In this document: positions 2,797 to 60,272 of the stretch, piece after piece | How positions within the stretch are numbered: position 1 is the stretch's first letter | Layout of the letters: each line of letters opens with the position of its first letter | Assembly: GCA_023515725.1 (NCBI GenBank) | Contig: JALDTO010000251.1 | Span: forward strand, 682,001 to 746,000 | From: Amoeboaphelidium protococcarum X5 | Lineage: Eukaryota; Fungi; Aphelidiomycota | Length of the DNA stretch: 64,000 bases | Direction: 5' to 3' | Translations under genes and position numbers: made by a program | Notes under the pieces: generated by a model | What the model was told of the DNA's origin: nothing | Databases searched by the model: none | What the model saw: only the letters and a program-made list of their open reading frames with translations

Positions 2797-5370
2797 TCAT
2801 TTCATAGATGTCTTGTTCGTGTTAACATGTGCACCATTGACAACAGAGTTATTCACAGGAATCACCTAAATTCTTTTTGGTGGATTGAGATACGGATCGC
2901 AGCAGATAGTGAGGACATCAGGCCGTAACTCCTAACGGTATTCTAAGCATCGCTTAATAAAGTTCTAGGCTTCAATGGAGATATTTGGTTTAGCAGGAAA
3001 TGTGACATTGTAGGCTTTCATTATAGTATTCTCGGCCAAGATGGTATTCTGCGACTGATCTTAACCAAAAGGTTTGACGCCAAACAGCAACTGGTAAAAT
3101 ATAACACCTGCACTCCACACATCAACCTTGGACGATATTCTCACACCACCACCACCATTTTCTCCCGACACATTTCCTTGATAGAAACACTCTGGCGGCA
3201 GATAATAATAGGTACCTGCAAACTGGCTGGTCAGCTCAATGTCACCATCACCACAGTCGTTCTCTATAATCTTGGACAATCCGAAATCTGTCAATTTTAT
3301 CCCATCATCAAACATGAGAATATTAGCAGGCTTAAGATCATAATGGATAACAGGTGGATTGATCGAGTTTAGATACTTTAACGCATTAAATACCTGCAGT
3401 ATAACCGCCTTGGCCTCCTTCTCAGGTAAGCATCGATTACTGCTTAAAGGCAGAGACTTGCAATACATATCTAGATCCATATTAGGACAATACTCCAATA
3501 CAATGGCAAATGAATTGTCATCAATCTCAAACATTTCATACAGATGGACAATTCTCTAATGGTTTAAAGACTTGTGGATTTTAAGCTCTCTAATAACATG
3601 CTTGATATAGTTTTGTCTCTTTTAATAACTCCATTGCTAATTCTACACATATGATATGAGCATTATAGGTTAATACGATTGGTTTAAACAAACTATAAGT
3701 CTTACCAAAGTCTGAATCTTGCATGCAACTTCTCTGAAAGTTTGCAGATCAAAAGCTTTATACACCTCGGAGAATCCACCTTTACCAACCAGTTTTGTCA
3801 GCAGATAGCGACTATCGAACAAGGGAAAATCTTTAAACTTGGAGCAGTCTTCATCCCGGATGCGTCGCAGCTCTATGGCGTGCAGCTCCTTCTAATGATG
3901 AATTTTCTCTCTTTCCAACATCAGTTCACCCTCTTCCTTCTTTAGATTCCCCAACTTCCACTTCAAAGCCTCGTCTTACTCATAAAGCTCAAAGTCTTGA
4001 TTTTAAATTGAGTCAATATTATCAGATATCTTAGAGTGCTTCCTTTTAAGAGTTAACTGCTTTCTCTACTTTTCAATATCTTCCTTCATCTGCTAAATTC
4101 TTTTCACTTTCTCATCCATATCCATCAATAGCTGACCATCTGACAATATCTCTCTATATCCATGACCGTGCTGTTCAGTCATAAGAGAACCAAGCTAAAG
4201 AGAATTAAGAGCTGCACTCCGACGGCATTCCAGACGTTCAGCTTTGGCATTATCCAAAATCAGTAACTTGAGAGCATTCTGAGCAGATTTTGCTTGATGA
4301 TCATATTTCTCACTCAAATCAGATAATTTATCTTCATAGAATGTAATAGTCTGATGCTTCTCATTGTGTAGACTCTTGATAGATTACTCTTTTTACATAA
4401 TATCATCTTGAAGCGAAGATATCTTACTAGACAACTCCCTTTGCACTCGCAAATGTTCATCATATAGAATCATGTTAGCATTCTCCTTCTGCGACACCTA
4501 CTATTCAGGTTTAAAGTAATCATCAATACGCAGTTTACGGGGAGTCTAAGCAATATCATGTTCGGCGGTATTCATCTTAATTGATGGCGACTATACGCAA
4601 CTGGATGATGCTGCATTCCTCTAAGGAGTACTAGAATTAGATATGCGATGAGGAGTAGATGTTTAAGCAGCATCTTGTTGTCTAACTCCGGGCACATTCA
4701 GAGCCGCACTCTCTATATTACCACCTCTTTTAGCCTGACTCAGCAAAAGTCTCTCAAAACGCGCTTTAACTTACTTAGGGGTGCGCTTCAACTTTGCCCA
4801 TTGTACAATTTATGGCCAATCATGACCAAACTTGAATATTCCATCTTCAATCAAGCGATCTTCGTCAGATGTAAAGCGAACATGAGCGGTCTTTTTCAGA
4901 GCACTGTGTTAATCATCGACAGCACCAGTTGTAGAATTAGCCATGCCATCAGCAGCTTTGTCCCCAGTCCAGACAATCTATGAGTCTTTAGCCAATTCAT
5001 GAAAGTTGGGATAGCAGTCAGGTGTGGAGGCATCATCGCGTTTCAACGGCGAAAACTGGAGTGGATCCTTCCCAGGGCCAACAGAGAGACGCTTATTCAA
5101 CAATAATTGGGATGTGAAGTCCTAGTCCTCAAAGTCATCCAGAATTGAATCTTCAGCAAGAGTGTCAATCATGGGATAATTTCGAGTTGGACCTTAATGA
5201 GGAGAGGATTGGTGTAAATTGAATTTTGCGCAGTGAGACTTGTCCGGCAATGCTAAGGTATCCAATATATCCGAATACGGGAATTGTTTCAACTTTTTAT
5301 TAGGATACTAGACATTTCCGACATATAGCTGCTATTCATTTTCTTTATCTACAGTGAGTTCTAACGTCAT
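2797..5370 (-). CDS. TLK: Tousled-like Ser/Thr kinase, about 836 aa, one intron (3643-3705)
   Basis: [23 protein letters not shown]|[77 protein letters not shown] are TLK signatures. A coiled-coil region lies upstream. TGA at 2797. Confidence 0.92.
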
Positions 5371-5632
5371 CCCTGTGAACTAGGTGACTTTAATTTCTCA
5401 AATATTATCAAGATACGGAGGATCGAGCAAGAGAAGGAGAAACGTCTGAGGAGAAACAAGAAAGGAAATCCGCATTGGGGTTGGGGGAAAGTTTTCGACG
5501 CGACGCGAAGTGAAACGAAATCGAATTTCAATCGAATCAAACAACATTTGATGATGATGGACGTTGTTACTTTGATAAAAGGGAAGAATGATTCTAGTAC
5601 GTAAAAATATTTCACACAAACAACAATCAATA

Positions 5633-8021
5633 TCATTGCAGCTCTTGCTAATCTGCGTAATGAAGAATCAATTCACTACCGCTGAATCGCTTGTACTTTA
5701 TAGTCGCCAAAGTCAGTTGATGATCCAAAATCTACAAAGACGCGTAATAATAACAATAATGTATCTCATCGTCATACAATTCAATGTCCTACCTGATCAT
5801 TGAGCAAAATTATAAGAGACTTTTTGAAATCCTTGTTACTGTATAGAGTCTTGTGACTTTGGCTTAAATCTTCAGCGATAAAGTCTACGATTTTAGCCAA
5901 TTAAATCATTCTATTAGTAACCAGTTTATCTTTTCTACACAAAATGTTTATCAGAATATAACTTGATGGATAAAGTAGAGCATACGATTAAGATAGACGA
6001 GGTAGAGCACTCTTAGAATGTGGCAATACGGTAAACGATATCTTCACAATATCTTTTTAAATTGGAACATCCTACAAAGCTAAATGCGAAACATTGCAAT
6101 ATACCACAAGATAAGCATACAGTACCTTTATAATGTAGGTGTCAATCCAATTAGGAAGATATTTGTTCAATGACTGGAAATTCTACTTCACATTACCCAG
6201 TTTGCATGAAAATATCTAAACAGGAACACATGCCTCGTTATGATCCATCTAAAACATAAGATTCGTATCAGGTAAGAACTTTACAAAAAACTTTTTCTCT
6301 TATCCTTCAAGTTTGGCCGTTCCATCAGAGCTTTGCGTCATCTACTTCTAATCTATAAAAGTTTTAAGCAATGAAGATAGTACAAGCTTGCCAACTATCA
6401 CTCGCATATCTTGACCATCGGCAGTAGAAGATGAAGACTTTCTGATAGCACTCTCGTACAATTCACCATCGAAAGCTTTCACCTCATTCAGAATGACTCT
6501 TAAGAGTCCATTGACACACTCAACGTTGCACCATTGCGCGCACCAATCGCTGGATTAGTTAAGTCTGTTGTACAATGCTTCGAAATCTTTATTGTTCATT
6601 TTTTCGAACTACTAAACAACTTGGCCATGAAGAATATTTACCAATTAGATATTTCCAGATATGGACATGGTCAACACGGATATGCGATCGTCCAACATGA
6701 GCTGTTTATGAATACCGTCTTGACACTAACTTTAAGCTATGGGCTCTATAGCTGGGATAAGAAGATCATCATCACCGCTCAAATCCACAGAACTATCCCA
6801 CAGCTCAACTGTTGGCTAATCTGTTCCACACACCAAGTAATTACGATGCGGAAGCCAGCACAGAGCAGTGATAGGCCGCTCATTCAACGCCACCACATGA
6901 TCGATGTATTCTTGAGAACCATCTCGGCGACGTTTAAAATGCCACATAGAGCCATCACGACACCCAGCGTAAAATTGAGACAAATCCGAATCGGCATTAT
7001 CGTGGCAGGATTGTGAAGATAACTCAAAGACTGAATCCTCAAAGTCACTAATTGTTTAGAGGCATCGCATCATACGCAGGGACCATATCTTGACAGTTTT
7101 GTCTGAACTGGCAGAAATTAAAGTTTATCCATCTGCAGAACTTAATAAACTCCTTACAGTGGCGCCATGAGCTTTAAGAGAATGTGCGGCGTGTTCCAAT
7201 CTTGGATCAATGATACTAACCATCTACAAAGTGCAAGAAACACTGAAAGTTATCACACTGTAATGATTATTACAAAATAAGAATAAATTACCCCTTTAAA
7301 ACTTCCAGCACATACAATATTACCGTCCCAAGATGTTGATAATGAGTAATTAGACTCAAGAGTACCCAAATGCCCACGAACCAGATCTACACCACAGTCA
7401 TCAAAAGCAAAGGTATTGATAAATACAAAGCAGTGTTCACAAATTTACCTACAGCACCGCCATTTTCTACATTCAGATCCCATTTAATAACTCTACCATC
7501 AAGTCCGGTAGAAAATAATTAATGTCCTTGATTAAAAGGAACAGCAAGTTTCTTCACAAAGTCAACGTGTCCCGATAGCACTGTAGAGTATTAAATGTCA
7601 CTCTTACGCAAGTCAGAAAGATTCCAGCATTTAATCGTAGCATCAGAACTAGCAGATACCACTACATGTATGTAAACACATAATGTTCATTCAAGAACTT
7701 TCACAAAATCTAAATAATTACGCGTTTATGCTTGATTAGCTAATTATAAGTCATTGATCCAATAATGATGTGCTTGCCATGCATCTTGTAATTAAATACT
7801 CAACTACATTGAACTTATAAAGATACTTTTAGCTTGTGAATTATTAAAGAATAACGTACATTGGTAGATTTATTATGTTCTAGAGACCAGCGTATAATTT
7901 AACCATCTTTCCCACCAGAGTACACCAAATCGTCTAATGACACGATACTATTCACACCAAGACGATGCCCCACTCCCTATTCATTCAATGGCAATTCATA
8001 AGCTAAACTGACTTTACTCAT
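5633..8021 (-). CDS. WDR48: WD40 deubiquitinase cofactor WDR48/UAF1 (Duf1/Bun107-like), 7 introns
   Basis: GHRLGVNSI..VYSGGKDGQIIRW, AHHYWINDL, LVSASSDATIKCW, and C-terminal KISFTVLP..ILDHQLTLATIK..ELILHY. Introns at 7804-7859, 7662-7721, 7387-7448, 7224-7291, 6072-6125, 5935-5985 and 5732-5792. Confidence 0.85.
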
Positions 8022-12313: not shown

Positions 12314-12478
12314 TTATGGTGTCGGATAGCTTCTTCTTTCTTTGAGGTATAACAGTACCGTATGTAATTTCGTTTGTCTCTCTATAAGTAAGTTTTTTGG
12401 ACTTGGTATTATTTCATTTTATTGCACTAGTCTTTAAGATGGGTGTATTTATTTTGCTTTCACGATACCCCAATTGAA

Positions 12479-16524: not shown

Positions 16525-16788
16525 TAAATCGCCTCGCTATTAATGTTACAACGAACAGTTTAAATATAAATATAAATAAATTTTTTATTTGTAGCTATGT
16601 CACAAGACTGATTGTCCGTCTGAGTACTCTGGGTGAGCTCCCATCAGCCGCCCTTGCAGGAAGAAGCATCTAAAGATCTTCTTGATTAAATCAGTAAGCA
16701 CAATCCACTTTCGCGAACCGGAACCTGGATAGCTCTCTTTCGCATCCAACTTGCTTCATACAAACAGTTTGAATAGAGTATAACTATC

Positions 16789-18148
16789 ATGATAAAACTA
16801 ATATTAACTTTTTTATTATTGTGTTCAACTTTTTTTGCTGCTGAGGAACAACAAATTTTAGATGATGACTTGGAAATGGGTTTGGGTGAGGAAACTGTGG
16901 AGTCTATACTTTCTAGTTATGATCAAATTAGTGTCAATGCTGAGAATAGACTGTTAACTAAACATGTGAAAGTTCTTGCGTACGTCACCCCATGGAACTC
17001 TCACGGCTATGATGTTGCTGTAAAGTTTAGATCAAAGTTTGACTTTATTAGTCCGGTATGGTTCCAGATTAGACCGCGGTAAATATGAATGAAACAGTTT
17101 TGTAAAGAGGTGTTCTCAGTTGTGATTGGATTGTGTTAGTGTAGGGATGGTGGTGGATATGATATAAATGGTGAACATGACGTTGATGCTCAATGGATTT
17201 AGCGAGTGAAACATGGTAATAATGAATCTTCCCAACAGTCCAGCATTGACGGTAGCCATATAGTTTAAATTATGCCCAGGTTTAGATTCGAGTTGCAGAG
17301 TTAGACTGACGCCATAAATATGCTAAAGGCAACCGATAATCCGTAGTTGGTCAAGTAATTAGTGAAGTCAATTGTAAAACTATGCTAAAAGAACAACTTT
17401 GATGGCATAGTTTTGGAAGTTGACTTGCCGTAATACTTTGTGGGTGTCATTTAGCTCATTTCAAAGCATCTGCGTAAAGATGGACTCGAATTGATTCTGG
17501 TAATTCCACCATCGACGCGTTTCAAGTCCTCACCTGGGTAGTAATCATAACAGATTATGCCATTCTCCTCTGTACACTTTTCACAATTATTCAATGATGT
17601 CAGCTACTTCTCCCTAATGACTTATGATTATTCGGGCAATGAATTACCTGGACCGAATGCTCCACTGAGTTGGATCTCTGATGAAGTTGATTTGCTTTGC
17701 GGTGAGCTCTCCGAATCCACTACCTAGAATGCTTGTGACAAAATTTTAGTGGGTATGAACATGTACGGGTACATATTTGATTCCAGTTCATCTGAAAAGT
17801 AAAGAGCAATCATTGGAACGCAATTCATTGATGAGTTGAAAACTTCTTCATAATACGCAGCTCACTGGGATGAGAATAATGAGGAATATAGATTTGAAAA
17901 TTCTATTCAAGGCACTGTGATATATTATCCAACTAAAAAGGTATATTTTTATTGTTATTCTATAGTTGTGTACTCCTACTCGTGTTCATTATGTAGTCTA
18001 TCAGGAAGCGCTTAGAATTCGTGTCGCGTTCCAAAACGGGTGTTTCTCTGTGGGAGATTGGTAAGTGTGGTATTGAAGCATCACAGTTTCGTTACAACTC
18101 TATTTTGGTGTAGGATAAGGATTGGACTATTTTTATGATATGTTTTGA
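16789..18148 (+). CDS. CHID1: Chitinase domain-containing protein 1 (GH18 SI-CLP type), 3 introns
   Basis: Signal peptide, [69 protein letters not shown]. Introns at 17079-17144, 17941-17996 and 18061-18113. Confidence 0.93.
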
Positions 18149-24598: not shown

Positions 24599-24703
24599 AG
24601 TTAGTTTATATATATATTATTTTGTGTTTGCGTATTATCTTCACCATTGCATTTTTTGATTGCATCTTTTCTTTTGATCGAAAAGCGACCATTCAGCTAG
24701 AAT

Positions 24704-26121
24704 ATGTCAACTTTTTTATTGAGCAAACGAATGAGTGTAAGATATTTATCAATTTAATTGTTATGAAAATTAGAATTATGCTATTTTATTTTAGAATGTA
24801 GAGTGTTCTGGCATAGCGAAATGGATCGCTGTAGACAGTCACGCTGAATAGACCAAAGGCTTTGAATGCATTGAATGTGGAAATGATTGGCGCTCTGAGA
24901 GTAGAGTTGGAACATTTTTAGAATAATCGCGCAGCGTAGTGTCTACTGCTCAAGGGAGAAGGTAGAGCTTTCTGTGCTGGAGGTGATGTCAAGGCTGTGG
25001 TCACAGCTGCAGTTAACAAGATGCCTAATGCTAATCAGTTCTTCGCTAGGGAGTATTACGTGAATCATATGATTGGCACCCAGTCTAAGCCCATTGTGGC
25101 TCTACTGAATGGAATCACCATGGGAGGTGGTGTCGGACTGTCTGTACACGCGCCCATTAGAGTTGCCACTGAGAACTCAGTGTTTGCAATGCCAGAGACT
25201 GCAATTGGACTATTTCCCGATGTTGGTGGATCCTTCTTTTTACCACGACTCGATGGTAAGTTGGGGCTGTATTTGGCTTTGACTGGTGCTAGATTAAAAG
25301 CGCAAGATTTGGTATGGGCGGGTATTGCTACTCACTATGTGCCTTCTGTGAATTTGCCACTATTAGAAGAACGTCTACAACACCTGAACAGCGATAATCC
25401 TGAGGTGATATCAGATGCAATTGAGGAGTTCAGTGGCGAGTTGTCTTATGGTCAGTATTCTCTATAGAAGAATCAAGCACTGAGCGTTATCGATAAATGC
25501 TTCTCTTATGAGAGTATCTTTGATACTGTTGAGAATTTGTAGAAGGATGGCTCAGAATTCGCGCAGTAAACTCTTCAGACAATGATGAAGATGTCTCCAA
25601 TGAGTCTGCACATAACCACAAGATAGATGCGCGAAGGTAAGGAGTTGGATTTTCTATCCTGCTTTGAAATGGAGTACACTCTGGCTTCCAGAACTTTACT
25701 AGCTTTGCAGGGTGGTGATAAATGTCGAGATTTTTATGAAGGTGTACGTGCTCTATTGATTGATAAAGACAACAAGCCGCAATGGAATCCTAAATCTTTG
25801 CAAGACATCAAGCCAGAGGATGTCGATTGGTTCTTCAAGGAATTGGGTAATGATGATGGTAGTGAACTCTAAACTAGTTCCGAAGCTACTTTTGACGCGT
25901 ACCCATTCAACTTTGGTCTACCATCTGAATTCCAGATTGAATTGCAATTTGATGAACTCCCCACCGCGTCAAAGAAGAAGATTACCAGTTTAGAGGATTT
26001 GGTTGAAGAATTCAAACTGCGATTCCCCGTTTACAAGAGAAAGCATGGTGCAGTTGCCAAGTTGAAGCATGTCCTTGCCATGAAGATGAGTGCGACTAAA
26101 GGCATCTCTAGTAAAATGTGA
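24704..26121 (+). CDS. HIBCH: 3-hydroxyisobutyryl-CoA hydrolase, mitochondrial, one intron (24737-24801)
   Basis: TLNRPKALNAL, RAFCAGGDV, FFAREY, GITMGGGVGLSVH, FAMPETAIGLFPDVGGSFFLPRL, DFYEGVRALLIDKDNKPQW. Confidence 0.95.
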
Positions 26122-26250
26122 TAACTTCAAATTATAATATCTCATAAATATTTTACCTTTAACTTAAATATGTAGCTTTGCGTATTCTTTTAATTGGAAT
26201 CGTTGATCTCCTGAATTCTTCCATCACAAACAGGATAATCTTTGATCAAG

Positions 26251-26877
26251 ATGAAATACGAGTTCAAGATTGATAATGATGAGGTTGGTCGCGTGTAAAT
26301 ATCATCGTTGAGTGGTATTAAGAGCCCACTTTAGCTAAAGAAAGATGTAATGTCTGGAAAGGTGTCTGCAGCTTTAATCAAACGGTAGATGGTATACAAT
26401 GACACCATACTCAAATTGGCGATATATAATGCATTGGAGTCGCGTCATAGAAACACTCTCAAAGCCAACACCGTCTATGGCGAAATTATTTACAATCTAT
26501 CACCTGCGATGCATGTAAACTATAATTGTTTTGTTAATCAGCACATATGTAAAGTTTAAAATACGTATATGTAGGTGTCGGAAGCTTTTAAATACTTTGG
26601 CTTTGATGAGAAGGATGATGATTTGTTGGCGGTGGAAATACTCCCTATAGATGGAACAGAATCAGAGGTACATCATATTGATCAAATATAAATTTTATTC
26701 TAATTGATGTAATATCGAATGTAGTGGACAACTTAATACGCCAATTCTGTGTTTGATAGTGTCGAGTTCAGTCCTGACGTGTAAAAGCTAAAGCAAGTAT
26801 TTCGAATTCCTTCAGATACTGACAACAAAAAACTTGACAGATTCATAATTAGCTCGCTGGCCACAAAACATACATGA
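26251..26877 (+). CDS. CGI121: EKC/KEOPS subunit Cgi121/TPRKB, 2 introns (26515-26574, 26668-26724)
   Basis: LKANTVYGEIIYNLSPAMH|VSEAFKYFG, DVQKLKQVFRI, C-terminal IISSLATK. Absent from the standard-code ORF track. Confidence 0.85.
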
Positions 26878-26895
26878 TAATATCCTCTCTTTACA

Positions 26896-27231
26896 TCATT
26901 CTTTCTTTTATTACTAATTCAATTATTATTATTATTCTTCTTCTTCTCTGTCTTCCATAATCTTTATGCGTTCCCAACTGTCAGCTAGACTTTAAAACTT
27001 GCCAGGATCGCGTCTCAGTAACCGCTCCACTGCGTCATCAATGTCCATTCGCTCCTGCAGACGTTTCCTACTCTCACTCACTCGTATGTGTTCATCTACA
27101 TGATTTAATACATTTTATTGCAATATATCACTACTTGTATATATATAAAACTTACAAAAGTTGAATCTAATCAACAAGTATTCCATTGCAGATCCAGCTA
27201 GAAAGCCGCCAACTGCATAAGGCCAATACAT
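26896..27231 (-). CDS. Small single-TM protein, SMIM4/UQCC5-like, one intron (27096-27155)
   Basis: MYWPYAVGGFLAGSAMEYLLIRFNF|YEHIRVSESRKR.. The F..G..ME...I...FY pattern resembles SMIM4. The family call is from memory of the motif only. Confidence 0.6.
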
Positions 27232-27727
27232 TCTCGATTGCGCGTTTTGATTTCAGAAATAGTTATTAGGAGTCACTCCATGTTTAGTTGTCGAACAGTC
27301 AGGCGAAAAGATTCAAGAAAGTCATAAAAATGTTAATATCGTCAACTGCAAGTATTTAAACGAACATTTTTTCTTGAACATATTTTTGAGGACACGGATT
27401 CACTTTATCATACCATCAAATAATTAAACTCGTTCCGGAAAGCTGTATTATAATCAAATTGTGAAGCAGTGAAACTCGTTTGAAAAACTGACGCGTTTGC
27501 ATCAATGTCATAAAGTATCTTTGACCTGTCCTCAAAAGTACATTGTATCATTGCTCATTCCATTAAGCGCGTATCACTCAAATTTTCTCTCATATTACTC
27601 AATTTTATTCTGCTAAGCGGTATAATTCTACATGTGGGATACATTCCGTTGCCAAATGATACAATAAAAGCTTAAACCACGAAAACCAGAGTTCTATGTA
27701 TTGTACAGTCATAATATATTCAACAAT

Positions 27728-28149
27728 TCAATTCATATCAACACCGCGATTTTATAAGTACTATTTAGCTTCAATAATTTCCTACCAACACTCATATGTA
27801 TCTTACAACTTTTGTGTGAATAGAAATGTATAATAAAGCACTTACCCGTTGCAACTCTTGATAAGCTTCAGGACAGTCGTTGATTGTCAAAACGTTGTAT
27901 ATCAATGTCAGTGCGCAATATGCACCAAATAATATTAATAGAATCAATGGAAGCTACACTAGAGATACATCACTATATTAAAGCCACTCTAGATACAAAA
28001 GATAATAAACTTACAAATGGCAAGACAGTTTTCGAGGTACTAGACAATCCAAGTACAGACTAAGACTGGAATAAATCAAACAAAACCACACCATAAAGTG
28101 ACATGAATGCAAAACTAGGCGAGAACAAGCGCATCAATAATTTGCCCAT
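27728..28149 (-). CDS. DPM3: Dolichol-phosphate mannosyltransferase subunit 3, 2 introns (27954-28014, 27782-27845)
   Basis: LPLILLILFGAYCALTLIYNVLTINDCPEAYQELQR|EIIEAKQYLQNRGVDMN matches the DPM3 signature. Confidence 0.9.
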
Positions 28150-28497
28150 AATGTCTTAAATGATTCTGACTGATATTATATCTACAGGTGATGCACAATA
28201 TATCAGAGAACAGTCAATGCAACACAAGTATAATGCTCTCTGTTGTTCAAAGAGAAACGGAGAAAAGAAACGAAACGCGTCGCGAAAAGTCTCTGAAGCG
28301 CAGAAAGTCTCTGCAGAAACTGGTGATTGTGCTTGTCGGCTGTATAAGGCAATAAAGAATATAAAGAAAAAGATATCTGAAGAAGCTCAATATGCAAATA
28401 TCATTATTTTGGGGAGAAACAGATTTTCATGCAAACTAGATCAACCATTGAGAATATGGGAACTGAAGAAAAGGAATGGATATACGGACCAATTTGC

Positions 28498-29436
28498 TCA
28501 CTACGCACCAGCGTTCAAACTCTTCTAAGCCGCCGGAACAATAACGAGAATGATGACAACAACGAGCACTGCCACTAGAATAATACAAGACACTGCCAAA
28601 CACCACTTGCGTCTACGGACAGAGTGAGCAGTTTTAATAGCGCGAGTCATTTCAGCATTACTAGCCTCAGTGTAAACCTTGGCACCTTCAATGTGCTGAC
28701 TGATAGACTCAATCTGAGCATTTTGCATATTTACAAGTTCATCCAAATCTGTAAATAGCGTGGCCAATTCTTCAATCTACTCAGCCAGCTAAGTCAAATC
28801 ATGCTATCTACTCTTCACATCCTTCAACAGACTCTTGGCCTCTTCATTATACGTACTACGAAGGATGTGATTGGCAAACACTTGTTCATTACTAAAGTCA
28901 GTCTTGTTGTTAATAATCTCTTCAATCTCGTACTGAGTAGCAGCAGGATTCACAATTTTATACTCACGCTCAAATCTGGCGCGCTATCGGCGCTACTGCT
29001 CCTCTTAATTTCTCTGATACGAGATGATAATGTCCCGCATTTTGGTGGCATGGGCAGTGTATTGAGTATTGGCCATTCTGTAATCAGCACTTCCGGGTAA
29101 CAATTCGCTCTTAATGATATTCTAAATCTCTTTTAATCTATTGCGAATCTTGAGTGCGAGAGAGTTGGCATCGCGATTCATAGCCTCGATTTCCTGTCTA
29201 GTCTCTATCAGAGTATCCGTATTGTTCTACTCAAATACGCGCTATGCTTTGCGCTACTTACCCTCCACCTGATCTATCAAGGATTGCAAGTCAGAGATCT
29301 ACTTTGACACAGAGTCCAGACAGGCCAAGATGTCATTCAGCGAGTGACCAGAGGATGTGCGGATAGAAGTCAATTCCATAGACTCGCCATTATTGCGGCT
29401 GGTAGTACTCAAAAAATCACCCGTTCGATCTCGCAT
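28498..29436 (-). CDS. Plasma-membrane type syntaxin (Qa-SNARE, Sso1/STX1-like), 312 aa
   Basis: MRDRTGDF N-peptide, Habc region, IVNPAATQYEIE, SNARE motif LATLFTDLDELVNMQNAQIESI, RRRKW followed by a C-terminal TM. Confidence 0.92.
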
Positions 29437-29840
29437 ATTCACTTGATACATAATTGACAGTATTTAAATTTAATATAGATTTGATATAAAACTAGAGAGA
29501 TTGCAATATGTAATAACCAGCGAGAAAGCTTCTTTGTGTCACAAAAAGGATAAGAAGAGATTTCCTACTGAATATCAACGCGCCGCTATTATGGAGAAAT
29601 TGAAAAACAAAACAGGGACGCGTCGGACGGGGAGTGATTCAGCGACCGCCAACGTGTCAAGGGGAAATACATTGCGCACTGACAAGCTAATCTACTGTAC
29701 TCTCTGGTCTCACATTGAGGCATTGATATTAGACATACAGATAAAAAAATAGTAATTTATAGTTATGACACTCAAATATAACAATGACATCAGCATAATC
29801 AACCGAATATAACATCAGTGGTCTCTGGACAGCCATAATT

Positions 29841-31133
29841 TCATTCAAGCATCTTTTAAAGTTTTCGGAGAGAATCAAGTTTCAACTGCGCGATTTTAGC
29901 ACACATCTAACAATCTTGAGATGGCATCTGAGTTATATTCATTATTCTCTAATATCCGGGGGATCGTTGATGAAAAGGGACCTGCCGCCATTTCTACCTC
30001 CGATTGTATTCATCATCATCACGTAATACGAGTTGGATATCTTTTACGGCATCTTGAAAGGATCTGCTTTAGTATTGAGAATCTACGCGGCCATCAACCT
30101 GAAGAAAATTCAGATCCTTGCGCGGAGGCATCAATATTGCACTATCGTTTGAGGGCATAAAATCAGACACAACATTTGGAGCGCCTAGATATATAGGCAC
30201 ACAACCCCATCGATAAGAATCCCACAGCTTTTCAGATACATAGTCGCGAGCATTACTGTTCTCAATAGCTACACATACCCTATAATGCTTGGCTAGCAGT
30301 TCTTTATTTACTCCACCTTTAAAGACATTCGCAGTCCAAGACTTATCATTGCCAATAGTCATAACTTTATCCTGATTATGCAAGCAAGTTCCATACGCAT
30401 GAATAGGTACACCGGCCTCCATGAGATCGCGCACAATATCTTCACGGCCATTCCGGGGATCACAGTTCTTCTGCACGTACAACACCGCAGGATATCGATG
30501 ATCAAGCCCAATGGCAGGGGGAGAGTAATACTCGGAAGCGTTACTAAAGTATCTAAGCACGACATCAGAATCTAATCTATAAGTCATGAGGAGATCAAAT
30601 TTGCTCATATACTCGACATCATTCATTCGTGCATAATATCCTGACGATTCGTATGAGAAGCCAATACTCCAACTTGTCTGAACGCCATTCTGCATCCTCA
30701 CCGGTTCCTATTAGCCAAAGTGAGTGGGAATATGATACCATAAGGCGTCAATGTAATCTTAGTTGACATCTTCTGTTCGTTTGAACATGTGACATTTAAT
30801 CGTCTCATTTCCCAGCCGACATCTTTTAATCTCGCCACCAAAATCATTACCCAGATAGTGTTTATTCTAAATCTTGATATTAACCTCGAGATGTCTTCGC
30901 TCACTATAGGACGATTACTGAGTGGAAGACGAATTTGGATGTAAAAGGGAGGATCTATTATATTCAGATGTTATTGGTGATGACTTTGCAGGAGAGTCAG
31001 GCTTTCTGCCTCTACTACCGTACCATTAATCAGAGTTGAAGAGCTTGTATTTGAACGCCACGAATAAGTTTAACACCACAATTAATTAAACTACCGCTGG
31101 AATTATAAACCGCCGACTCCATACAGACTTCAT
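29841..31133 (-). CDS. Alpha-1,3/4-fucosyltransferase (CAZy GT10), type II membrane, 430 aa
   Basis: N-terminal TM, FDLLMTYRLDSDV, and the GT10 motif YRVCVAIENSNARDYVSEKLWDSYRWGCVPIYLG. Confidence 0.9.
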
Positions 31134-31565: not shown

Positions 31566-34214
31566 ATGTTTTGGAGATTCGGATTCCAGTAGACGTCATC
31601 TAATATTGAGAATCTTTTGGATAGAGAGGGCGGATGTACATTGTATGAGTTGTTCCGAGAGGATGAACTACTGCAAGAAGTCAAGACTTAGAACAACAAG
31701 GTTATTGAATTGTAAGAACTACTTTTCACCATTGAAATATAATTTTGAATTAATGATAATGCCAGTTGTAGTCTTTGTCAAGAGAACAACCTCAAGTAAA
31801 TTATTACTTGGTTGTGTGGTATTCCAGAGACTGAAGTGGAGTAGAATGAATTATTGGCGGATGAGCGCTTCAAGTTTCCATTTGTGGCTTCAGAGATTTT
31901 GTGCTGTGAGACTAATGCTTTCATTAATGAACTTGTGGATAGTCACATGGAGTTTATGGATATTTTATACTCTATTATCGACACTGAACAAGATATCAAT
32001 CCGGTTAATGCGGGGTATTTCAATAAAGTTGTCGGAACTCTGTTGGTGAAGCGAACGCATGAAACTTTGCAGTACCTGAGGTAGAAGTAGAATTGCGTCC
32101 AATAACTTCTTCGTCATGCTTGCACTTTTGCTATTGGTGATGTCATCCTTAAAATTATAGCGTGCGATACTTATGAAGAAGGACATGATATTACCGGGTG
32201 GCTCTCGGAGGCGGCGTTAATTGATAAAATGTTTGATATGTTCAATCCCGCACTTGATTATCAGTGGCATTCCACAGCTCAGTTGTTACTCGTGGACATA
32301 ATTTCTGTCTATTCATAATCCCAGATTGTGGACTCTGATCTATTGAGTTGTAATGCGTTAGTACAGTAAATAAAAGGAAAGTAGAATGTGGAGAAGTTGA
32401 TTTCGTTCATTACGCGGCCACCAGGTGATAATATTCAGTAGTAGTCATCTTGTATCGTTTATGGTGTAAAGTTGCTGACTGAATTGATCAAACATTATAC
32501 TCAGAGTGATGAAGATGATATGGCATCTCAGATGAGTGAAGGTGGTGGCGGCGGTGAGTTCGGAGCTATGACAGCGCCTGCACCTATCATTAAGAGAGAT
32601 CCGCTGAATATTGATGAGCTGATTGATGTGGTTTGCAGTAACGATACCGTGGTTTAACTGAAGAATATTCTGTAGAAGCCGGTTGGTAAATTAGTGCCCA
32701 GGGATTTAAGCACAGGAATACTTATACCTTTTGGTGGTGAGAGACTTGCGGTGGTTGAATTCTTTGTCAATTTATTGGAGGCTGCTAGTGGTAAGGTGCA
32801 CTCCAATCTAGGTACTCTGGCCAACTTGGCATCTTTATAATCTATGGATAGTCAGTAGCATGAAAATACCAAGCCTGCAGTGTTTAAGCTTCTTCTTGAT
32901 AATGGCATTCTATCTATAATCATGGGGTATTTCTTTCAATTCACTTGGAATAATCTGCTGCATAATTTGGTGATTTAACTTTTGGATAATCTATTTAATG
33001 CACCGCTGTAGTATTCAGAACAGTTAATCATATCCTTATTTAAGGATGCTGAATTGTGTAAATAGATTTGTAAAGCCAACAAGTAGAATCAGGTTAGTGT
33101 AGCACAGCCAAAATCGTTGAGACTTGGCAATATGGGACACATCACTCTGATGACTGAAAAAATACTGCGCTTCATCTCCAGACACAGCGGTGGTAGCAGT
33201 AGCGATGATGGTGATGGAAAAGAACCTGCTTAAAGTGAATTGTAATTGCATGTTATTGCGCCGTTGACCAATGATGAGGAGTGGTAGGAATACGTCAATG
33301 GGTGGTATAAAGATGCAGAATTGAAGAATAACAGGTAATTTGCGGGTGGAAAGCCTGTATTTATACCGTCTCCACTCAGCGCTGGAATGAATGGATTAAC
33401 ACTGTCCACTCCTGGGAATGGCAGTGCCTAGAATACTCAACTATCATCTGGTGAGATTGATCAGTAGTAGGCGTAAAGTTTATCGTACTTTGACATGTCA
33501 TCGGATTAAATGGCTAGATTTATGATCCAGTAGGTGATTTCAGATTTCCCAAATCGTTATGGGTCCACCTCTGCCGGATCTGCGGATGATGACGATGATG
33601 CTGGTGGTTGGGTGGATTATCAGAGTTTTGGTTTATAAAATAATAATCCAAGTTCCTTGCCTAGGAACAACGATGATGGTAATAAGAATCAAGTTGATTA
33701 AACGAGAATTTCCATTGGTGAAGAGGATGAAACTGCTGACAATGATGATGATGGTGATGATAGTCCTGGTGCCACTAACGGTCAAGGCAAGCGATAAATG
33801 AAGTAGAATCCTGCTTCATCTGACGCGTCTAATTTGTAAGGGAAAGCATTTTTAGATCAACTGTTTGGTGCTCCTGTTTTATAAACTGATCTGTTTGCTG
33901 CTATTGAGACTTCACATAATACCACCGAAATATCTGTAGATCATATTACATCCATTGGTACGGCAACTTCACAAAACGGGAATGATTCTGCTGATTCTAC
34001 AACAAAGGACGTGGTGTAAGAGTCTAATGATATTGCTGACTAAGTTGTTGGTCAAGTCAAAGATGTGAAATTGCACGATTAGGAAGATGATCGACTAAAT
34101 GAAGGTGCAATACAATAGGAAAGTGACTCCGTCGTATCTCAAAAACAGGATGATGGCAAGCAGTCTTCGGAGTCTAACGCGTAAGACTAGAGTAGCAATA
34201 TCAAGGGAGAATGA
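31566..34214 (+). CDS. SIT4/PP6 phosphatase-associated protein (SAPS family), one intron (31712-31771)
   Basis: MFWRFG, EDELLQEVKTQNNKVIEF|L, RFKFPFVASEILCCE, YFFQFTWNNLLH, RLGNMGHITLM, then an acidic disordered tail. Confidence 0.93.
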
Positions 34215-39669: not shown

Positions 39670-40860
39670 TCACACGGTGCTAACCTGATTAGTTTTAGCC
39701 ATCTCAGGGCTGTTGACAATGCCATCCTGCTCAACGACAGATCGCTTTGCCAACTCGCCGTCGCTCTTCTGGACGCGATCGAGATTCTCCTGTTTACGCT
39801 GCGATGGATCGACATCTCGGATTCCAGCAGAGGCAACTTCAGCAAGCTCCTTCTCGATTGCCTCAATATTTGACTTTCTGATACGGAAGACGAATCCGGT
39901 GTCATAATCCTTTTTATTCACCAATTCAAACAGCACCGCTGGAATTATGGGTGGAAAGGCGAGGCAGATTGCAATTCTCAGAGACTTGGAACATCCCTCA
40001 CCAAAGAACATTCCCTTGTACGCCTTTGGAATGTGCTCGACAAATTCATCGTTAGTTATGCGCACGCTCAGATGATCAAACTCGTCACCAAATTTGTCTT
40101 TTATTGACTGGCAGACAGCCTTCAACTTGCTGGATGCCACGTACTTGTAGATGTTCAGTGACTTGTGCTTATGTCTCATATCCAGATGATAGTTACCAAT
40201 TGACTCGGGATTATAGATCAGATAGTCAGTATCAATGAACTTGGAGATATCGACGCGCAGATCCATAACCTTCTTTCGCTTCTGGCTAGCCTTGTTGTTG
40301 GTGCTATTTTCATCATGAGACATCACTGACATATCAGCCTGCGTTGGTGCAGCCTCGCCATCTCTCGAGTAACGGAACCCAATTATACGGATGTACAGCT
40401 TGGGAGGAGTCACATATATTTGAGAATCAATAATAGCCTGCTTAATTGACAGCAGCTCAGGAGTAGTGTCCAGTTGGCGATTAGTCACAATGTTAGTGTT
40501 AGGTGTGCGGAATACGCTAGGTGCAGTGGGAGGGAAAGCTGGCCTGGCCTTGAGCATATCTTCAATATTCGCCGTGTGATCAGACTTGGAAGCTCTTGTG
40601 TACTCATCACTATTGAAACGAATCTTGGGCGAAGCTGGTTTTAGCTCAGCATCTGGAGTGGAAGCAGCTGTATCAGAAGCTTTATCTCCCAAAGCATTGG
40701 ATTTAGGGATAAACGGACTATCGGATGATGCAGTATTCACAGAAGGGGAAACGTTATTACTCGGCATACCATTAGACATCTTAAGGTCACGCATCGCTGC
40801 GCTATCAGAGGATATGTCAATGGCAGGTGGCAGCGGCAATTCGTCAATATGAAGCTTCAT
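39670..40860 (-). CDS. Hypothetical protein, 396 aa (disordered N-terminus, one late hydrophobic segment)
   Basis: ATG to TGA and open even in the standard code. No family recognised with confidence. Confidence 0.8.
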   Translation of the reverse strand: MKLHIDELPLPPAIDISSDSAAMRDLKMSNGMPSNNVSPSVNTASSDSPFIPKSNALGDKASDTAASTPDAELKPASPKIRFNSDEYTRASKSDHTANIEDMLKARPAFPPTAPSVFRTPNTNIVTNRQLDTTPELLSIKQAIIDSQIYVTPPKLYIRIIGFRYSRDGEAAPTQADMSVMSHDENSTNNKASQKRKKVMDLRVDISKFIDTDYLIYNPESIGNYHLDMRHKHKSLNIYKYVASSKLKAVCQSIKDKFGDEFDHLSVRITNDEFVEHIPKAYKGMFFGEGCSKSLRIAICLAFPPIIPAVLFELVNKKDYDTGFVFRIRKSNIEAIEKELAEVASAGIRDVDPSQRKQENLDRVQKSDGELAKRSVVEQDGIVNSPEMAKTNQVSTV

Positions 40861-41327
40861 AGTGTGCGATTGGTCAAATGTGCAGAGATATTACCGAGAA
40901 TTCTCACAGTTAAGATTATCTGTAAGCTAAAGAATGTGCAAGCAGTAATAGGCGGTTGACAAGGAGAGCTAAATAATGTGGGAATAAAGCATGACAATAG
41001 CCTTTCATGCCTTTGTTGTCTGGCTGATTTTGGCCCAGATCCGACAAAGTCTAAAAATAGCCTTTTATGCCAACTGAGTTTAGATCGCTAAGTCTCTGTG
41101 AATCTGCACTTGTCAACCAGTATTTCAGGGATTGTCAAAACAATCTGGATTCTACTGTTTGGTAACTGGTATCAAATTTTTGACGGAAATTAGTCCAAGC
41201 GACTAATACCACAACATTTGTAATAGATATACAATTTCCGGCACCAAAAACGGCATCAGACGACTATTCAAGGGGTGTCAAGTGTAATAACGTATAATAA
41301 ACTTACGTCACGAAACTATCGATATAT

Positions 41328-45211: not shown

Positions 45212-46082
45212 ATGGTAAGACTCTTAAAATGAACGATTTTAATATATATTTTAAATGTGTTTAATATCCATGTAGCAATAAAGTCTAGATTTATACAACC
45301 CAGAAGGATTGAGGATCGATGGAAGGCGGGGAGATGAGTTGAGAAATTGCTCCCTTCGGATGGGAGTTCATCAGCATTGTGATGGGTCTGCACTGATAGA
45401 AATGGGAAACACGAAGTTATTTTCTATAGTACGTGGACCTTAGGAATCCAGTGCCAAAGATACTGGTGATCGATGCAGAATCGTGTGTGATATCAAACTG
45501 GCTCCATTCTCCAGTACGGCCATGGAACGCAAAAGATAGATGAAATTCGATAAACGCCTGGAAGAGATTGCATCTACAGTATCACTGTGCTTCTCTGAAG
45601 TTGTTCATACACAGTTGTTCCCAAGATCTGATATTGTGATTGAGATACAGGTAGTCTCTGCTGATGGTGGTCTCTTATCTGCTGCTATCAACGCCACTTC
45701 AATGGCTCTGATTGATGCCGGTATCGCAATGACAGATTACATCTGTTCCACGGTGGCGGGCATTGTTCGCGACTAGCCTATAGTGGATCTTAATAATTAT
45801 GAGGAGTCGGCGAGTTATGATGTACCGCGTCTCACCGTTGCCATCTTGCCGCATAAGATTGAGCGTGGATCTGGTATGCCGCGCGTCGTTCTGCTGACGG
45901 CCGAGTCGCGAATCCACATCAACAAGTTTCGTCAGATCAATCAGCTCGCCATTGAAGGTGCGATGAAAATGAGGCCCTTGATGGATCACATTGTAAAAAA
46001 GAGAGTACTGGAGCGTTTTAATAGTAGCAGTGGTGATATTAGACGTGAAGATTCGCCGTCCATGGAAGTTGATTCTTCCTGA
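45212..46082 (+). CDS. RRP41: Exosome subunit Rrp41/Ski6 (EXOSC4). The first coding exon is the ATG alone (intron 45215-45275).
   Basis: PEGLRIDGRRGDELR, DGSALIEMGNTK, APFSST..ERK, LFPRSDIVIEIQVVSADGG..AAINATSMALIDAGIAM, DLNNYEE. Confidence 0.93.
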
Positions 46083-55404: not shown

Positions 55405-55654
55405 TTATTATTACGTGAATTTTTAACATGATTTTGTTATTTCCCTATATCGTCAATGCTTCTCATTTTGATTTTTCTGTATCTAGTACTGAGGAGATAT
55501 CCCCGTTCATTCGTAAGCGTGTTTCTGTTTTGATCTCGACTTGGCTCGCTTTGATCTTTATCTTCACCATTACCACATCGCTATTGTCTTCTCTATACAT
55601 TTATCACCTATAAATAATAATTTAAACTAATTTAGTACTGTCTCAACTCTAATA

Positions 55655-56764: not shown

Positions 56765-56892
56765 ATAATAAAGCATACTTGACATTAAGACTAAGATCCG
56801 GACTCTGCTTGCATTATGATTGAGTGTAGATTGACTTATTTATAGATCTATTTTTGATATTGATATCTCAGTGAAAACAGTAATAGCTGTGA

Positions 56893-56894
<2 letters not shown>

Positions 56895-56922
<28 letters not shown>
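56895..56922. repeat. (AT)14 microsatellite ending 1 nt before the DUSP start codon
   Basis: Direct reading of the sequence. Confidence 0.95.
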
Positions 56923-56923
<1 letters not shown>

Positions 56924-56925
<2 letters not shown>

Positions 56926-57619
56926 GCCAAAGGTTGAATTAAGATAGTAGCTGTTGGACGCAGCAGCTAAACTCAAAATGAATGAATAAGGCACGGTGGT
57001 CACTGCGATTGATGGATCCCGTCGCGTTGAGGTCAAGTTGCCTGGCACTGGAGAATTTTCATCTAAACAAGTCTTGAATTCAATCGCTGGTAGTAATAAT
57101 AATTCTATCAGTGATGATTAAAGAGAGTAGAAAGATGTCTGGTTCATAGAAGATACAAGCGATGACTCAAGGCCCGCATAGATTCTAGATCATTTGTATG
57201 TTGGATCTGTGGACGCTGCTTTTAATTTGCCATTGTTAGTCAGGCTAAACATTAGACATATAATCAGCGCTATACCGCTCAAGTAGAGTCCATAACATGA
57301 GGATAATGGAATTACTATTACTACAATCAGGATGGATGACGTTGTCGAGCAGTAGTTGAAACACGAGTATATTCAAAAATGTAACGAGATAATATTCGCT
57401 GCGTAAAAGTCTGGCTGCGCAGTGCTTGTGAATTGTTATGCAGGCGTATCGCGCAGTGTAAGTCTTGTGATTGCGCATTTGATTACTGTTCATGATATGG
57501 ACTATGATGGTGCATTAACGCTGGTGAGATCAAAGAGAAAATAGGCCTTACCGAACACTGGATTCTAATTGCAACTGCGATTGCTAAGGTAAACGTTTAG
57601 AGCATCGGATTGTAAATGA
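56924..57619 (+). CDS. Atypical dual-specificity phosphatase, DUSP19-like, 231 aa
   Basis: PAQILDHLYVGSVDAA, VLVNCYAGVSRS, ALTLVRSKRKQALPNTGFQLQL. Confidence 0.9.
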
Positions 57620-57890
57620 AAATTTTACTTTCCATCGATTATACTAGTTTCAATTGCTTTAACTTGATTCCGATTCAATGCGACTTGAATACAGTAATCT
57701 ATAAACTTCATGATAAAATGTTCATTATATAACCGTGTCAAAATCTTCCCATCGCTCGATGCTGGTGATGATGATCGTGACGGTTCATAGGTGGTACTGA
57801 GAATCAAAAACTTTTATCCATTACTTATTCATTAATCACAAATCGAAGTCGCGGTAAGGTTAACTAATTATTTTTTTTAATCCAAGTGCA

Positions 57891-58700
57891 ATGCCCAAAA
57901 TCTTGGATGAATTGTGTAAAGATCCATAAGAAAGGGTCAAATTTGACGCATTAGCCGAGTATTTCCACGAGTTGGATGTCGTGGACTTGATTGAAATTGA
58001 CGACCCTGATGACATGGTTGGTGATGTGCTGCCCTGTCATCGTTTGCTGATGCGAGTCTTTATTAAAAAGTACTTAATTCCGCTGCACCAGCGCTCGACG
58101 TAACCTTTAATACAAAGTAAAGTCGTTACTGTCAATGAGGATGGTATCGTACGTGTCTGTGGTTAGCTAGTTCCAACATTTCTGGCAAGTGCTAGTCAAA
58201 AGCGCATGACAGTACCCAGATTCCATAATTGGCTGGTGGAAGGTAATGATATACCTAAATCCAAACTGAGATTTATCGATATGTCAATGAACAATCTGAT
58301 GTCTTCCGATATGAAGTACATATCTGCTATGGTTGAAGAATTGAGCACTCGTAATTTGATTAATCCATCTGGACTGATTTTGGATTTGTCGTCCAACCGC
58401 GTTCATGGAATTGCACAGTATCGAGAGGAGGTGGATGGAGCCGTTAAGACTATATTAAGTTGTCCCTCTGTGGCATTTCTAGATTTGAGGTCAAATCCAT
58501 TCTCATCTGTAGATCGCAGAGACTATTTCCAAAGCATAACGACAACTTCTCCCGTAGCTTCTAAATTGATCTGGGTTCATGATATTCATCTGCCTACCCA
58601 TGGCTGGCGCGGTCTGGTGCCTGATGACGTGGTCAACGTGGTATTGGAGTCCCACAGTAAGTATTTTGCCTGGAGAAAAGAGAACCATTTATTGAACTGA
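57891..58700 (+). CDS. Hypothetical protein with degenerate leucine-rich repeats, 269 aa
   Basis: LRFIDMSMNNL, LILDLSSNRV, VAFLDLRSNPF. The frame extends upstream from ORF 58206 to ATG 57891 through TAA/TAG. Confidence 0.75.
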
Positions 58701-59394
58701 AACTCCAGTTGTCTGAATAGATCAGCAATCGTATGTATCATTGATCTTTTTTAAATCTTTTTGTTTTCGAACCGGCTATATATCATCTATCTTCACGCTC
58801 ATATACACGCTTTCAGTCCGGTATCTTGTTGGCTATTTATATGTTTTCGCCTTAATGAATTGTCACTGTTCTAACTTCTTTGGGAAATTTTCAACAACTC
58901 AAATAAGCTGAACTTTTGCTTGAGATATCGAGCGCCATCACTTTGGTCAGTATCTATATCCAAAGCAGTGACTTGCTCAAGACAAGGATGAGCTGGGAAC
59001 GCAACTAAATGGTGCAAAGAGGAAACTTTCTGAATACGCAATTATCATTAAAGTAGATGTGGATTGGTCACTGGGCGTTAATACTGTAATCATATCGGCG
59101 CCTCTAAGTCATAATACACTATCGCCGCCCATACATACCTGTTTCAACTATCGCGATCTCAACGCCGCGTCCGTCGTGTCCGTCGTTATGTTGTTTCATA
59201 TCAAACTGAGTGAAGAAAGTAAACGCGCGTCTTCTGTTCCAACATTTCTATTTCACCCTCATACCGCGGTTTATATACTTGCACTTACCTCTGTGTCTCG
59301 CTCCTATTCTGCAATAGCTTGTTATTTTATAACTTGAGATCATATTTCCGTACAACTTACCGCTGTTTTGAATCGCAGAGATTTACAAGTTAGT

Positions 59395-60272
59395 ATGGTT
59401 ACAACTAGGCGTTCCTCCATGATGAGAAAGAACAGTCAGTCTACCGCTGATCGTAATAGTGGTGGCATTGAAGTAGGAAATAGAGAAAATGAAAGCAGAT
59501 AACGTAATATAAAAGCTGTGGATGCGGTTGTTAATTAGGCCAAGAACGAACGGCGAGTCTCTAGAGGAAAGAGGAAAAAGTCTACTCAGAATGACACTAG
59601 TAAAGGCTCTACTCACACTACCGCTGTTGAATAGTAAATTGATGATAATGACTATGATGCTGAAAGTTACAAAAATAAAAAGTGCAAAGGTGATTCTGAT
59701 TAAGCTGAACATGAAGAATAGTAACAATAGGCTGAAGTTGTGAAATAAGGTATTTACTCTTGTCCGACTTCATTGATAGGTTGATGATAATCCTAACCAT
59801 ACGCGTTTGTAGTTGTACCTATACCACCAGCTGATTTTTTGGTGTATGCGGACGTGGATGAGAATATCATTGATCTTATTAGCAAGATCTACTACTCTAA
59901 CAAATATTACTGCGGCGAAGAAGAGTTTCGGTAAGGTTAAATCTATAATATGAGCGTGTTACTTACTCACCCACTTTACTTGATGATACATGACGCCTGT
60001 TCAAGTGTGTAGACACGTGATTATGCCTAAAGAGCTGTATGAGATCATTCCAGATGAGTACAGAGATCGTCTACTGGCAGATGATGAATGGTACCGTCTT
60101 GGTATTCGAATGTCTCCTGGTTGGTAAGAATTATATCACCTCTTTTTTCACATATAGAATATGGGACTTTCATGTTCTCTCACGGCTTTATTTCCATATA
60201 TGTAGGCATCATTATGAATTGCATGAACCAGAACCTCACATATTTCTGTTCCGAAGGCAGCGGACTGGTTGA
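59395..60272 (+). CDS. CKS1: Cyclin-dependent kinase regulatory subunit Cks1/Suc1 with long N-terminal extension, 216 aa, 3 introns
   Basis: IYYSNKY..EFR|HVIMPK..EWYRLGIRMSPGW|HHYELHEPEPHIFLFRR. Introns at 59750-59812, 59931-60012 and 60124-60205. Confidence 0.88.

Follow-up and report, generated by a model that had tools for sequence, protein, structure and literature searches.

In Caenorhabditis elegans, introns end in UUUUCAG/R, an acceptor word that is read by both subunits of U2AF (PMC2483917; PMC4484395), a recognition for which the relevant passages of these papers cite Zorio and Blumenthal (1999). Near-invariant extended acceptor words are rare: a survey that covered 50 eukaryotes recorded five departures from plain YAG, among them the anchored acceptors of Giardia, Trichomonas, and Yarrowia (ACTAAC-ACAC-AG, CTAAC-AC-AG), and none of them is like the word described here (PMC2483917). 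Most fungi have no polypyrimidine tract (PMC2483917). Here, we analyze the introns of a 64,000-nucleotide stretch of Amoeboaphelidium protococcarum X5 DNA (contig JALDTO010000251.1, positions 682,001 to 746,000; this whole stretch is referred to below as the window, and its own numbering is used). These introns begin with GTA and, with a single exception, end with TGTAG.

Intron ends in the window and their conservation

The window is nuclear DNA of Amoeboaphelidium, in which TGA is the only stop codon and TAA and TAG are sense codons. Under the standard code, the 64 kb contain two open reading frames (ORFs) of at least 600 nt, vs 63 when TGA is taken as the sole stop, and within long ORFs TAA and TAG together outnumber CAA and CAG. 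A stop-free ORF of 406 residues is 95% identical to an Amoeboaphelidium protococcarum protein, and reassignment of UAR to Gln is known for the Amoeboaphelidium lineage (PMC5304391). A search of the assembly (23.6 Mb, 346 contigs) revealed, on contig C179 (about 59–128 kb, minus strand), a collinear second copy of the window with 86–89% nucleotide identity. With this second copy, the assembly fits a hybrid or two-subgenome genome with homeologous pairs.

Re-derivation of the introns between positions 3643 and 60205 yielded 22, all of which start with GTA; 21 end with TGTAG, one ends with GGTAG, and none ends with CAG. The number and the span agree with those given in a preliminary description of the window. 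The length range of 51–82 nt reported there is correct at its upper bound and has to be extended at the lower one, since one intron of the WDR48-like gene is 50 nt long.

Splicing was followed in assembled transcript contigs of four public runs (X1–X4; one metatranscriptome and three runs of one organism, with contigs covering genes and not intergenic bins), which were aligned to 6 kb of the window (24600–30599). The contigs were 95–99% identical to the window, and those of X2–X4 were closer to the window copy than to the homeolog. RNA joints were found at 24737–24801, 26515–26574, 26668–26724, 27096–27155, 27782–27845, and 27954–28014, and nowhere else in the interval. Thus, all six introns previously placed there were seen as joints, five with TGTAG and one, at 27782–27845, with the exceptional GGTAG, which is thereby confirmed. 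In the HIBCH gene, the joint 24736>24802 is present in X1, while an X2 contig starts at 24802 and is preceded by letters of the upstream exon; TGTAG is used, and a TTTTAG five bases earlier is skipped. The same choice is made in the 27954–28014 intron of the DPM3 gene, where CTCTAG is skipped in favor of TGTAG. Four introns had been said to bypass a YAG shortly upstream of their acceptor. RNA bears this out for HIBCH and DPM3, and the homeolog does so for CHID1; for the SAPS gene, the basis is frame and motif.

About 26 kb of the window could be aligned with the homeolog on C179, and 19 introns are positionally conserved in this alignment. Across the 19 pairs, identity was complete at positions −5 to −1 (95/95) and +1 to +3 (57/57), while it was 12/19 at −6, 16/19 at each of +4, +5, and +6, and ~78% (about 15/19 per position) in intron interiors, which also contained indels of any length. 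Positions −5 and −4 alone were conserved in 38 of 38 cases. Since these terminal positions are invariant between homeologs while −6 and the interiors vary, purifying selection is shown to act on exactly GTA at the 5′ end and (T/G)GTAG at the 3′ end. The probability of TG at −5 and −4, calculated from intron composition, is 0.058, and its presence in at least 18 of 19 introns has P of about 1e-21. The skipped upstream AGs are unprotected: in the homeolog, CTCTAG of DPM3 reads CTCTAC and TTAG of CHID1 reads TAAG, and the adjoining TGTAG is unchanged in both. Within gene bodies of the ~26 kb alignment, all indels whose length is not a multiple of three fall inside these introns, except for a 1-nt difference at 58525.

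Intron catalogue and anatomy

The gene identities proposed earlier agree with exon-by-exon Pfam matches for Pkinase, ECH_2 (HIBCH), CGI-121, DPM3, RNase_PH, and CKS; matches of the WDR48-like gene to WD40 and of the CHID1-like gene to GH18 were only weak. Exons were compared with domain models one at a time and never as a joined protein. The junctions in the DPM3 and CKS genes are pinned, because the middle exons fit their models end to end. The introns are as follows (coordinates, strand, length, ends, gene, support).

3643–3705, minus: 63 nt, GTAAGA...GTGTAG, protein-kinase (TLK-like) gene; ends kept in the homeolog, 1-nt internal indel; Pkinase Pfam match on the adjoining exon piece
5732–5792, minus: 61 nt, GTAGGA...TTTGTAG, probable last intron of the WD40 (WDR48-like) gene; both ends kept in the homeolog, 6-nt internal indel; open frame past the acceptor
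5935–5985, minus: 51 nt, GTATGC...GTGTAG; ends kept in the homeolog, 2-nt internal indel
6072–6125, minus: 54 nt, GTACTG...TTTGTAG; interior ~57% identical to the homeolog, TGTAG and donor GTA at 6125 kept
7224–7273, minus: 50 nt, GTAATA...TTTGTAG; ends kept in the homeolog
7387–7448, minus: 62 nt, GTAAAT...GGTGTAG; ends kept in the homeolog, internal indels of 1, 1, and 4 nt
7662–7721, minus: 60 nt, GTAATT...CATGTAG; interior 63% identical, 1-nt indel, ends kept in the homeolog
7804–7859, minus: 56 nt, GTACGT...AATGTAG, first intron of the WD40 gene; ends kept in the homeolog, no internal indel and hence weaker support
17079–17144, plus: 66 nt, GTAAAT...TTAGTGTAG, CHID1/GH18-like gene; ends kept in the homeolog, 2-nt internal indel; skips TTAG 5 nt upstream
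17941–17996, plus: 56 nt, GTATAT...TATGTAG; ends kept in the homeolog, internal indels of 1 and 6 nt
18061–18113, plus: 53 nt, GTAAGT...GGTGTAG; ends kept in the homeolog, 8-nt internal indel
24737–24801, plus: 65 nt, GTAAGA...TTTTAGAATGTAG, HIBCH (ECH_2) gene; RNA joint; skips TTTTAG; conserved in the homeolog; ECH_2 Pfam match
26515–26574, plus: 60 nt, GTAAAC...TATGTAG, CGI-121 gene; RNA joint in X2, X3, and X4; TTTGTAG and internal indels in the homeolog; CGI-121 Pfam match
26668–26724, plus: 57 nt, GTACAT...AATGTAG, CGI-121 gene; RNA joint in X2, X3, and X4; AGTGTAG and internal indels in the homeolog
27096–27155, minus: 60 nt, GTAAGT...CATGTAG, small ORF (SMIM4-like in the preliminary description); RNA joint in X2 and X3; homeolog indels of 3, 8, and 5 nt, ends kept
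27782–27845, minus: 64 nt, GTAAGT...TTGGTAG, DPM3 gene, the sole GGTAG exception; RNA joint in X2 and X4; GGTAG also in the homeolog
27954–28014, minus: 61 nt, GTAAGT...CTCTAGTGTAG, DPM3 gene; RNA joint in 4/4 runs; skips CTCTAG; homeolog CTCTACTGTAG, with the upstream AG lost and TGTAG kept
31712–31771, plus: 60 nt, GTAAGA...CCAGTTGTAG, gene labeled SAPS earlier; placed by frame and motif only; skips CCAG
45215–45275, plus: 61 nt, GTAAGA...CCATGTAG, RNase PH (Rrp41-like) gene, directly after the ATG; placed by motif and position only; RNase_PH Pfam match downstream
59750–59812, plus: 63 nt, GTATTT...GTTTGTAG, Cks1 gene; ends kept in the homeolog (GAGTGTAG)
59931–60012, plus: 82 nt, GTAAGG...GTGTGTAG, Cks1 gene; homeolog indels of 3, 10, and 1 nt, ends kept; the next exon fits the CKS model end to end
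60124–60205, plus: 82 nt, GTAAGA...TATGTAG, Cks1 gene; 1-nt homeolog indel, ends kept; the junction ...SPGW|HHYELHEPEPH continues the CKS family pattern

Several placements deserve comment. The intron at 5732–5792 is plausible and is not discriminated from the alternative of a stop immediately past its donor. For the 6072–6125 intron, the donor is the GTACTG at 6125, which corrects the earlier placement, because the GT at 6120 reads AT in the homeolog. The donor of the 50-nt intron lies at 7273, since the 18 nt upstream of it are exonic and differ from the homeolog by three synonymous third-position changes only. In DPM3, the Pfam match spans the middle exon end to end. The 31712–31771 intron contains an in-frame TGA, and its removal joins open frames of 115 and 813 codons. 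One candidate of our own, at 5349–5416, was dropped, its donor being deleted in the homeolog. A motif-blind finder, which scored GT..AG pairs by flanking codon usage and forced restoration of the frame, failed to separate true from false candidates, the exons being short and the frame remaining open through many introns.

The introns are 50–82 nt long (median ~60) and have a GC content of 0.29, vs 0.38 in flanking exons. The donor is G|GTA followed by A (15/21), G (12/21), and T (11/21); there is thus a weak GTAAGT preference at positions +4 to +6, which had been taken to be degenerate. The earlier statement that neither a polypyrimidine tract nor a branch-point consensus is present agrees with our data: no pyrimidine bias was found at −30 to −6 (C is absent at −6), and no branch motif was enriched, YTRAY occurring in 41 of 63 motif-selected introns vs 35.6 ± 4 in shuffles. 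Nor was a branch motif anchored near the AG observed, positions from −6 upstream varying both within and between homeologs. An AG-exclusion zone could not be detected (AG frequency of 3.2–4.1% near the acceptor vs 3.7–3.8% elsewhere in the intron), and within the last 20 nt of the 19 validated introns, AG occurs in nine and YAG in five. All 22 introns are of the GT..AG type, and six of them are removed in RNA contigs. No donor carries ATCC at +3 to +6, as in the U12-type consensus RTATCCTT (the U12 branch consensus being TCCTTAAC). The missing branch motif and tract do not exclude U2-type membership, because the same is true of many fungi (PMC2483917). No sequence shared among the introns was found.

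Of 21 introns, 10 have a length divisible by three, and in roughly half of the 10 no TGA lies in frame (for example, 3643–3705, 26515–26574, 26668–26724, and 27096–27155). Such stopless introns make up about a quarter of all, which is near the chance value of ~0.23, with no depletion of the kind reported for short-intron ciliates. Calling introns by frame therefore fails in this genome, where TGA is the sole stop, and the TGTAG signal should be built into gene prediction for aphelid genomes and metagenome bins.

Some additional features of the two copies were observed. At its 3′ end, the GGTAG intron has 27 nt (27782–27808) that do not differ between homeologs, an identity far above that of other introns; they may compensate for the weaker acceptor or be identical by chance. 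The 1-nt length difference at 58525 falls within a run of T late in an ORF of 299 codons (57801–58697) that is open apart from this; conserved splice sites are missing nearby, and the difference could reflect either a C-terminal frameshift in one of the copies or an error of assembly. A dispersed repeat of ~200 nt at 16563–16771, adjoining the CHID1-like gene upstream, has at least 11 other genomic copies with 73–99% identity. It is flanked by the direct repeat ACAGTTT plus A/G, carries an A/T-rich tail at one end, matches no tRNA and no Rfam family, and is a young insertion, as judged from its absence from the homeologous locus. Self-comparison of 20 kb yielded just one dispersed and one simple repeat. 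A poly-glutamine tract at 1385–1480, within the long ORF 708–2651, is encoded mostly by reassigned TAG in a run of TAG/CAG triplets, and similar runs are present at many places in the genome.

Recognition of the acceptor word

AG-ending pentamers located 50–85 nt after GTAAG were counted in 264 kb (the window and 200 kb upstream of it). TGTAG was the only one enriched (29 vs 13.9 expected), and in the same DNA GGTAAG, GTAAGA, and AGGTAT were enriched upstream of TGTAG only, not of GGTAG, AGTAG, TTTAG, or TTCAG. This narrow window after GTAAG was informative; wider donor-anchored windows and GTA-only anchors drowned in background. In the whole genome, GTAAG-N(45–75)-TGTAG has 2490 matches, ~1400 above the ~1080 expected from word frequencies scaled from the 264 kb, an excess in agreement with that estimated locally. 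A reversed-pattern control gave 2773 matches vs 2490 and is uninformative, the word frequencies of the control being different.

The components that might read the word were sought in the assembly. A single U2 small nuclear RNA (snRNA) gene was found (114 bits). Its branch-site recognition sequence is the canonical GUAGUA (...AAGUGUAGUAUCUGUU...), which answers the U2 part of the snRNA inspection proposed in the preliminary description. SF1 is present, with an SF1-HH match in two homeologous copies. The large subunit of U2AF is a 520-codon ORF, whose RRM2 and UHM match TIGR01642 and no sister family. Its RRM1 is recognizable by eye, an RS-repeat N-terminus is missing, and an N-terminal peptide matches the fragment of S. 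pombe U2AF59 that was co-crystallized with the small subunit (7C06, 4YH8; E 7e-9).

The reading we favor, and to which we give about an even chance, is that these are ordinary U2-type GT-AG introns whose 3′ splice site is set by U(−5) G(−4) U(−3) A(−2) G(−1) read by U2AF. The U2AF heterodimer would recognize the pentamer early, at the definition of the 3′ splice site. UAG would fall to the small subunit, as it does in other eukaryotes, and the adjoining UG either to RRM1 of the large subunit or to a small subunit that is itself altered. Such reading would replace binding to a polypyrimidine tract, much as nematode U2AF acts on UUUUCAG, and the extended word may take over the roles of both the tract and the choice of the first AG. 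A bolder version, which we consider possible and clearly less probable, holds that the purine-containing UGUAG wholly replaces the polypyrimidine-tract and first-AG rules, its reader being a modified U2AF or some new factor. Perhaps the stringency was favored because retained short introns would largely escape nonsense-mediated decay where UGA is the sole stop. This rationale fits the data loosely, given the 10 of 21 introns with lengths divisible by three, about half of them stopless; the share of such stopless introns is near chance.

Several observations weigh against U2AF reading of the pentamer. The recognition of UG at −5/−4 by U2AF is proposed by analogy. A profile search for CCCH proteins gave matches, none of which was assigned as the U2AF small subunit; two of them, on contig C141 (18374–18880), make up one candidate. 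U6 was not found with Rfam or with a conserved-core pattern, so that an RNA–RNA contribution is possible. The RNA evidence spans 6 kb and comes from assembled contigs, where rare isoforms drop out. In exons, TGTAG is depleted only mildly: the sense strand of 153 kb of long ORFs has 159 copies vs 184 ± 13 expected (NTG-TAG codon pairs account for 61 of the 159). Pairs of the form GTA-N(45–85)-TGTAG, whose exonic depletion had been proposed as a check, are at chance level in long ORFs (110 vs 119 ± 14 expected), and splicing of most of them would break the frame. Two sense-strand decoys of the GTA...TGTAG form, at 25455–25542 and 27628–27706, are covered by contigs and show no joint. Thus, of the earlier claim that a 5-nt word defines acceptors, the constraint on the word stands, as seen from RNA, homeologs, and skipped AGs, while definition by the word alone does not, exonic decoys being at chance level and at least two of them unspliced. 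TGTAG looks necessary and is insufficient by itself; contributions must also come from the donor, the tight range of lengths, and the A/U-rich interior.

The UG could instead be read late, at the docking of the 3′ splice site for exon ligation, by Prp8, Slu7, Prp18, proofreading of the Prp22 type, or pairing with U5 or U6, and not by U2AF. We regard this as rather unlikely. It would account for the skipping of upstream AGs without an AG-exclusion zone, and the GUA common to donor and acceptor could mean one shared reader in the core. Solved structures of the C* and P complexes are not known to show specific contacts beyond positions −3 to −1, and U2, the sole snRNA read, contains no complement of UGUAG. 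Late reading has a parallel in C. elegans, where skipping of proximal sites also needs second-step helicases (PMC10946429). Less probable again is a lineage-specific RNA-binding protein other than U2AF that would recognize UGUA(G) and recruit or position the 3′ splice-site machinery. Without a pyrimidine tract, the U2AF large subunit has no usual ligand, and no candidate for such a protein was identified. The retention by the large subunit of RRM1, RRM2, UHM, and the small-subunit peptide argues for continued use of the standard heterodimer. A separate reader would suit the wide use of UGUA as a binding word for proteins in other systems, as in PUF and CFIm25 sites.

Two further explanations deny the word a role of its own. 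TGTAG could be a historical or mutational residue of intron origin, by insertion at, or duplication of, a GTA-containing target, with no function beyond the AG. The GTA at both intron ends is consistent with this, as are the young mobile insertions with target duplications that the genome carries. We consider this explanation very improbable: introns share no sequence, −5 and −4 are kept in 38 of 38 cases vs ~78% at neighboring intron positions, and upstream AGs are skipped in RNA. Finally, the pattern could be an artefact of ascertainment, only introns that fit it having been recognized. The introns were first delimited by eye, and frame alone could not have placed those whose lengths are multiples of three and which contain no in-frame TGA. 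The RNA joints, which are unbiased, coincide with the predicted introns in six of six cases and reveal none extra; the frame-breaking indels of the 26 kb alignment lie, all but one, inside these introns; and the donor-anchored pentamer counts show no second acceptor word. In the regions tested, the artefact explanation is thus refuted.

It had also been suggested that the acceptor co-evolved with the reassignment of TAG to Gln. This link is weakly motivated, because the window has no more TAG than CAG (1877 vs 1927), the reassignment itself makes exonic TGTAG, and, to our knowledge, organisms with abundant CAG codons use YAG acceptors. A JGI metagenome contig encoding a 36% homolog of the window ORF 39673–40890 uses the standard code and has no synteny with the window. 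It contains, at 6514–6575 between two minus-strand ORFs, one GTA...TTTGTAG candidate of 62 nt, too weak to show whether a standard-code relative shares the acceptor.

Comparison with known acceptors

In full-text searches on the acceptor word and on splicing in aphelids, no published description of a TGTAG acceptor came up; an earlier description is possible, and the pattern must be implicit in the public annotation. With G invariant at −4, U at −5, and neither a pyrimidine tract nor an AG-exclusion zone, these introns offer a clean natural system for asking what picks the AG and how U2AF or another factor shifts its specificity. The homeolog pairs of the hybrid genome provide a built-in comparative test that can be extended to every intron.

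The introns of Amoeboaphelidium resemble typical fungal introns in short length, a GTAAGT-like donor, and the lack of a polypyrimidine tract. In fungal acceptors, however, −4 and −5 are unconstrained and both CAG and TAG occur, unlike in those of Amoeboaphelidium. In plants, whose introns are U/A-rich, the acceptor consensus is UGCAG|G, with statistical preferences at −5 and −4 and C preferred at −3. The register (U at −5, G at −4, Y at −3, then AG) and the dependence on an A/U-rich interior are the same, but the plant preference is weak, whereas in Amoeboaphelidium all five positions are practically fixed, with U at −3 in 21 of 21 introns. The acceptors of Giardia, Trichomonas, and Yarrowia are similar in having a long conserved 3′ motif and no polypyrimidine tract. 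Their motif joins the branch site to the AG at a set distance, while in Amoeboaphelidium nothing upstream of −5 is conserved (12/19 at −6).

The nematode word differs in being a compressed pyrimidine tract followed by CAG, whereas the Amoeboaphelidium word has an invariant purine, G, at −4 and U at −3, with no pyrimidine run, and recognition by U2AF is demonstrated in the nematode and only inferred here. In both organisms, the acceptor word is longer than YAG, introns are short, the branch consensus is weak or absent, and nearby AGs are left unused; in Amoeboaphelidium, as in nematodes, the word is conserved beyond YAG and preferred over neighboring AGs. The TTTTCAG acceptor of nematodes is the closest functional parallel to TGTAG.

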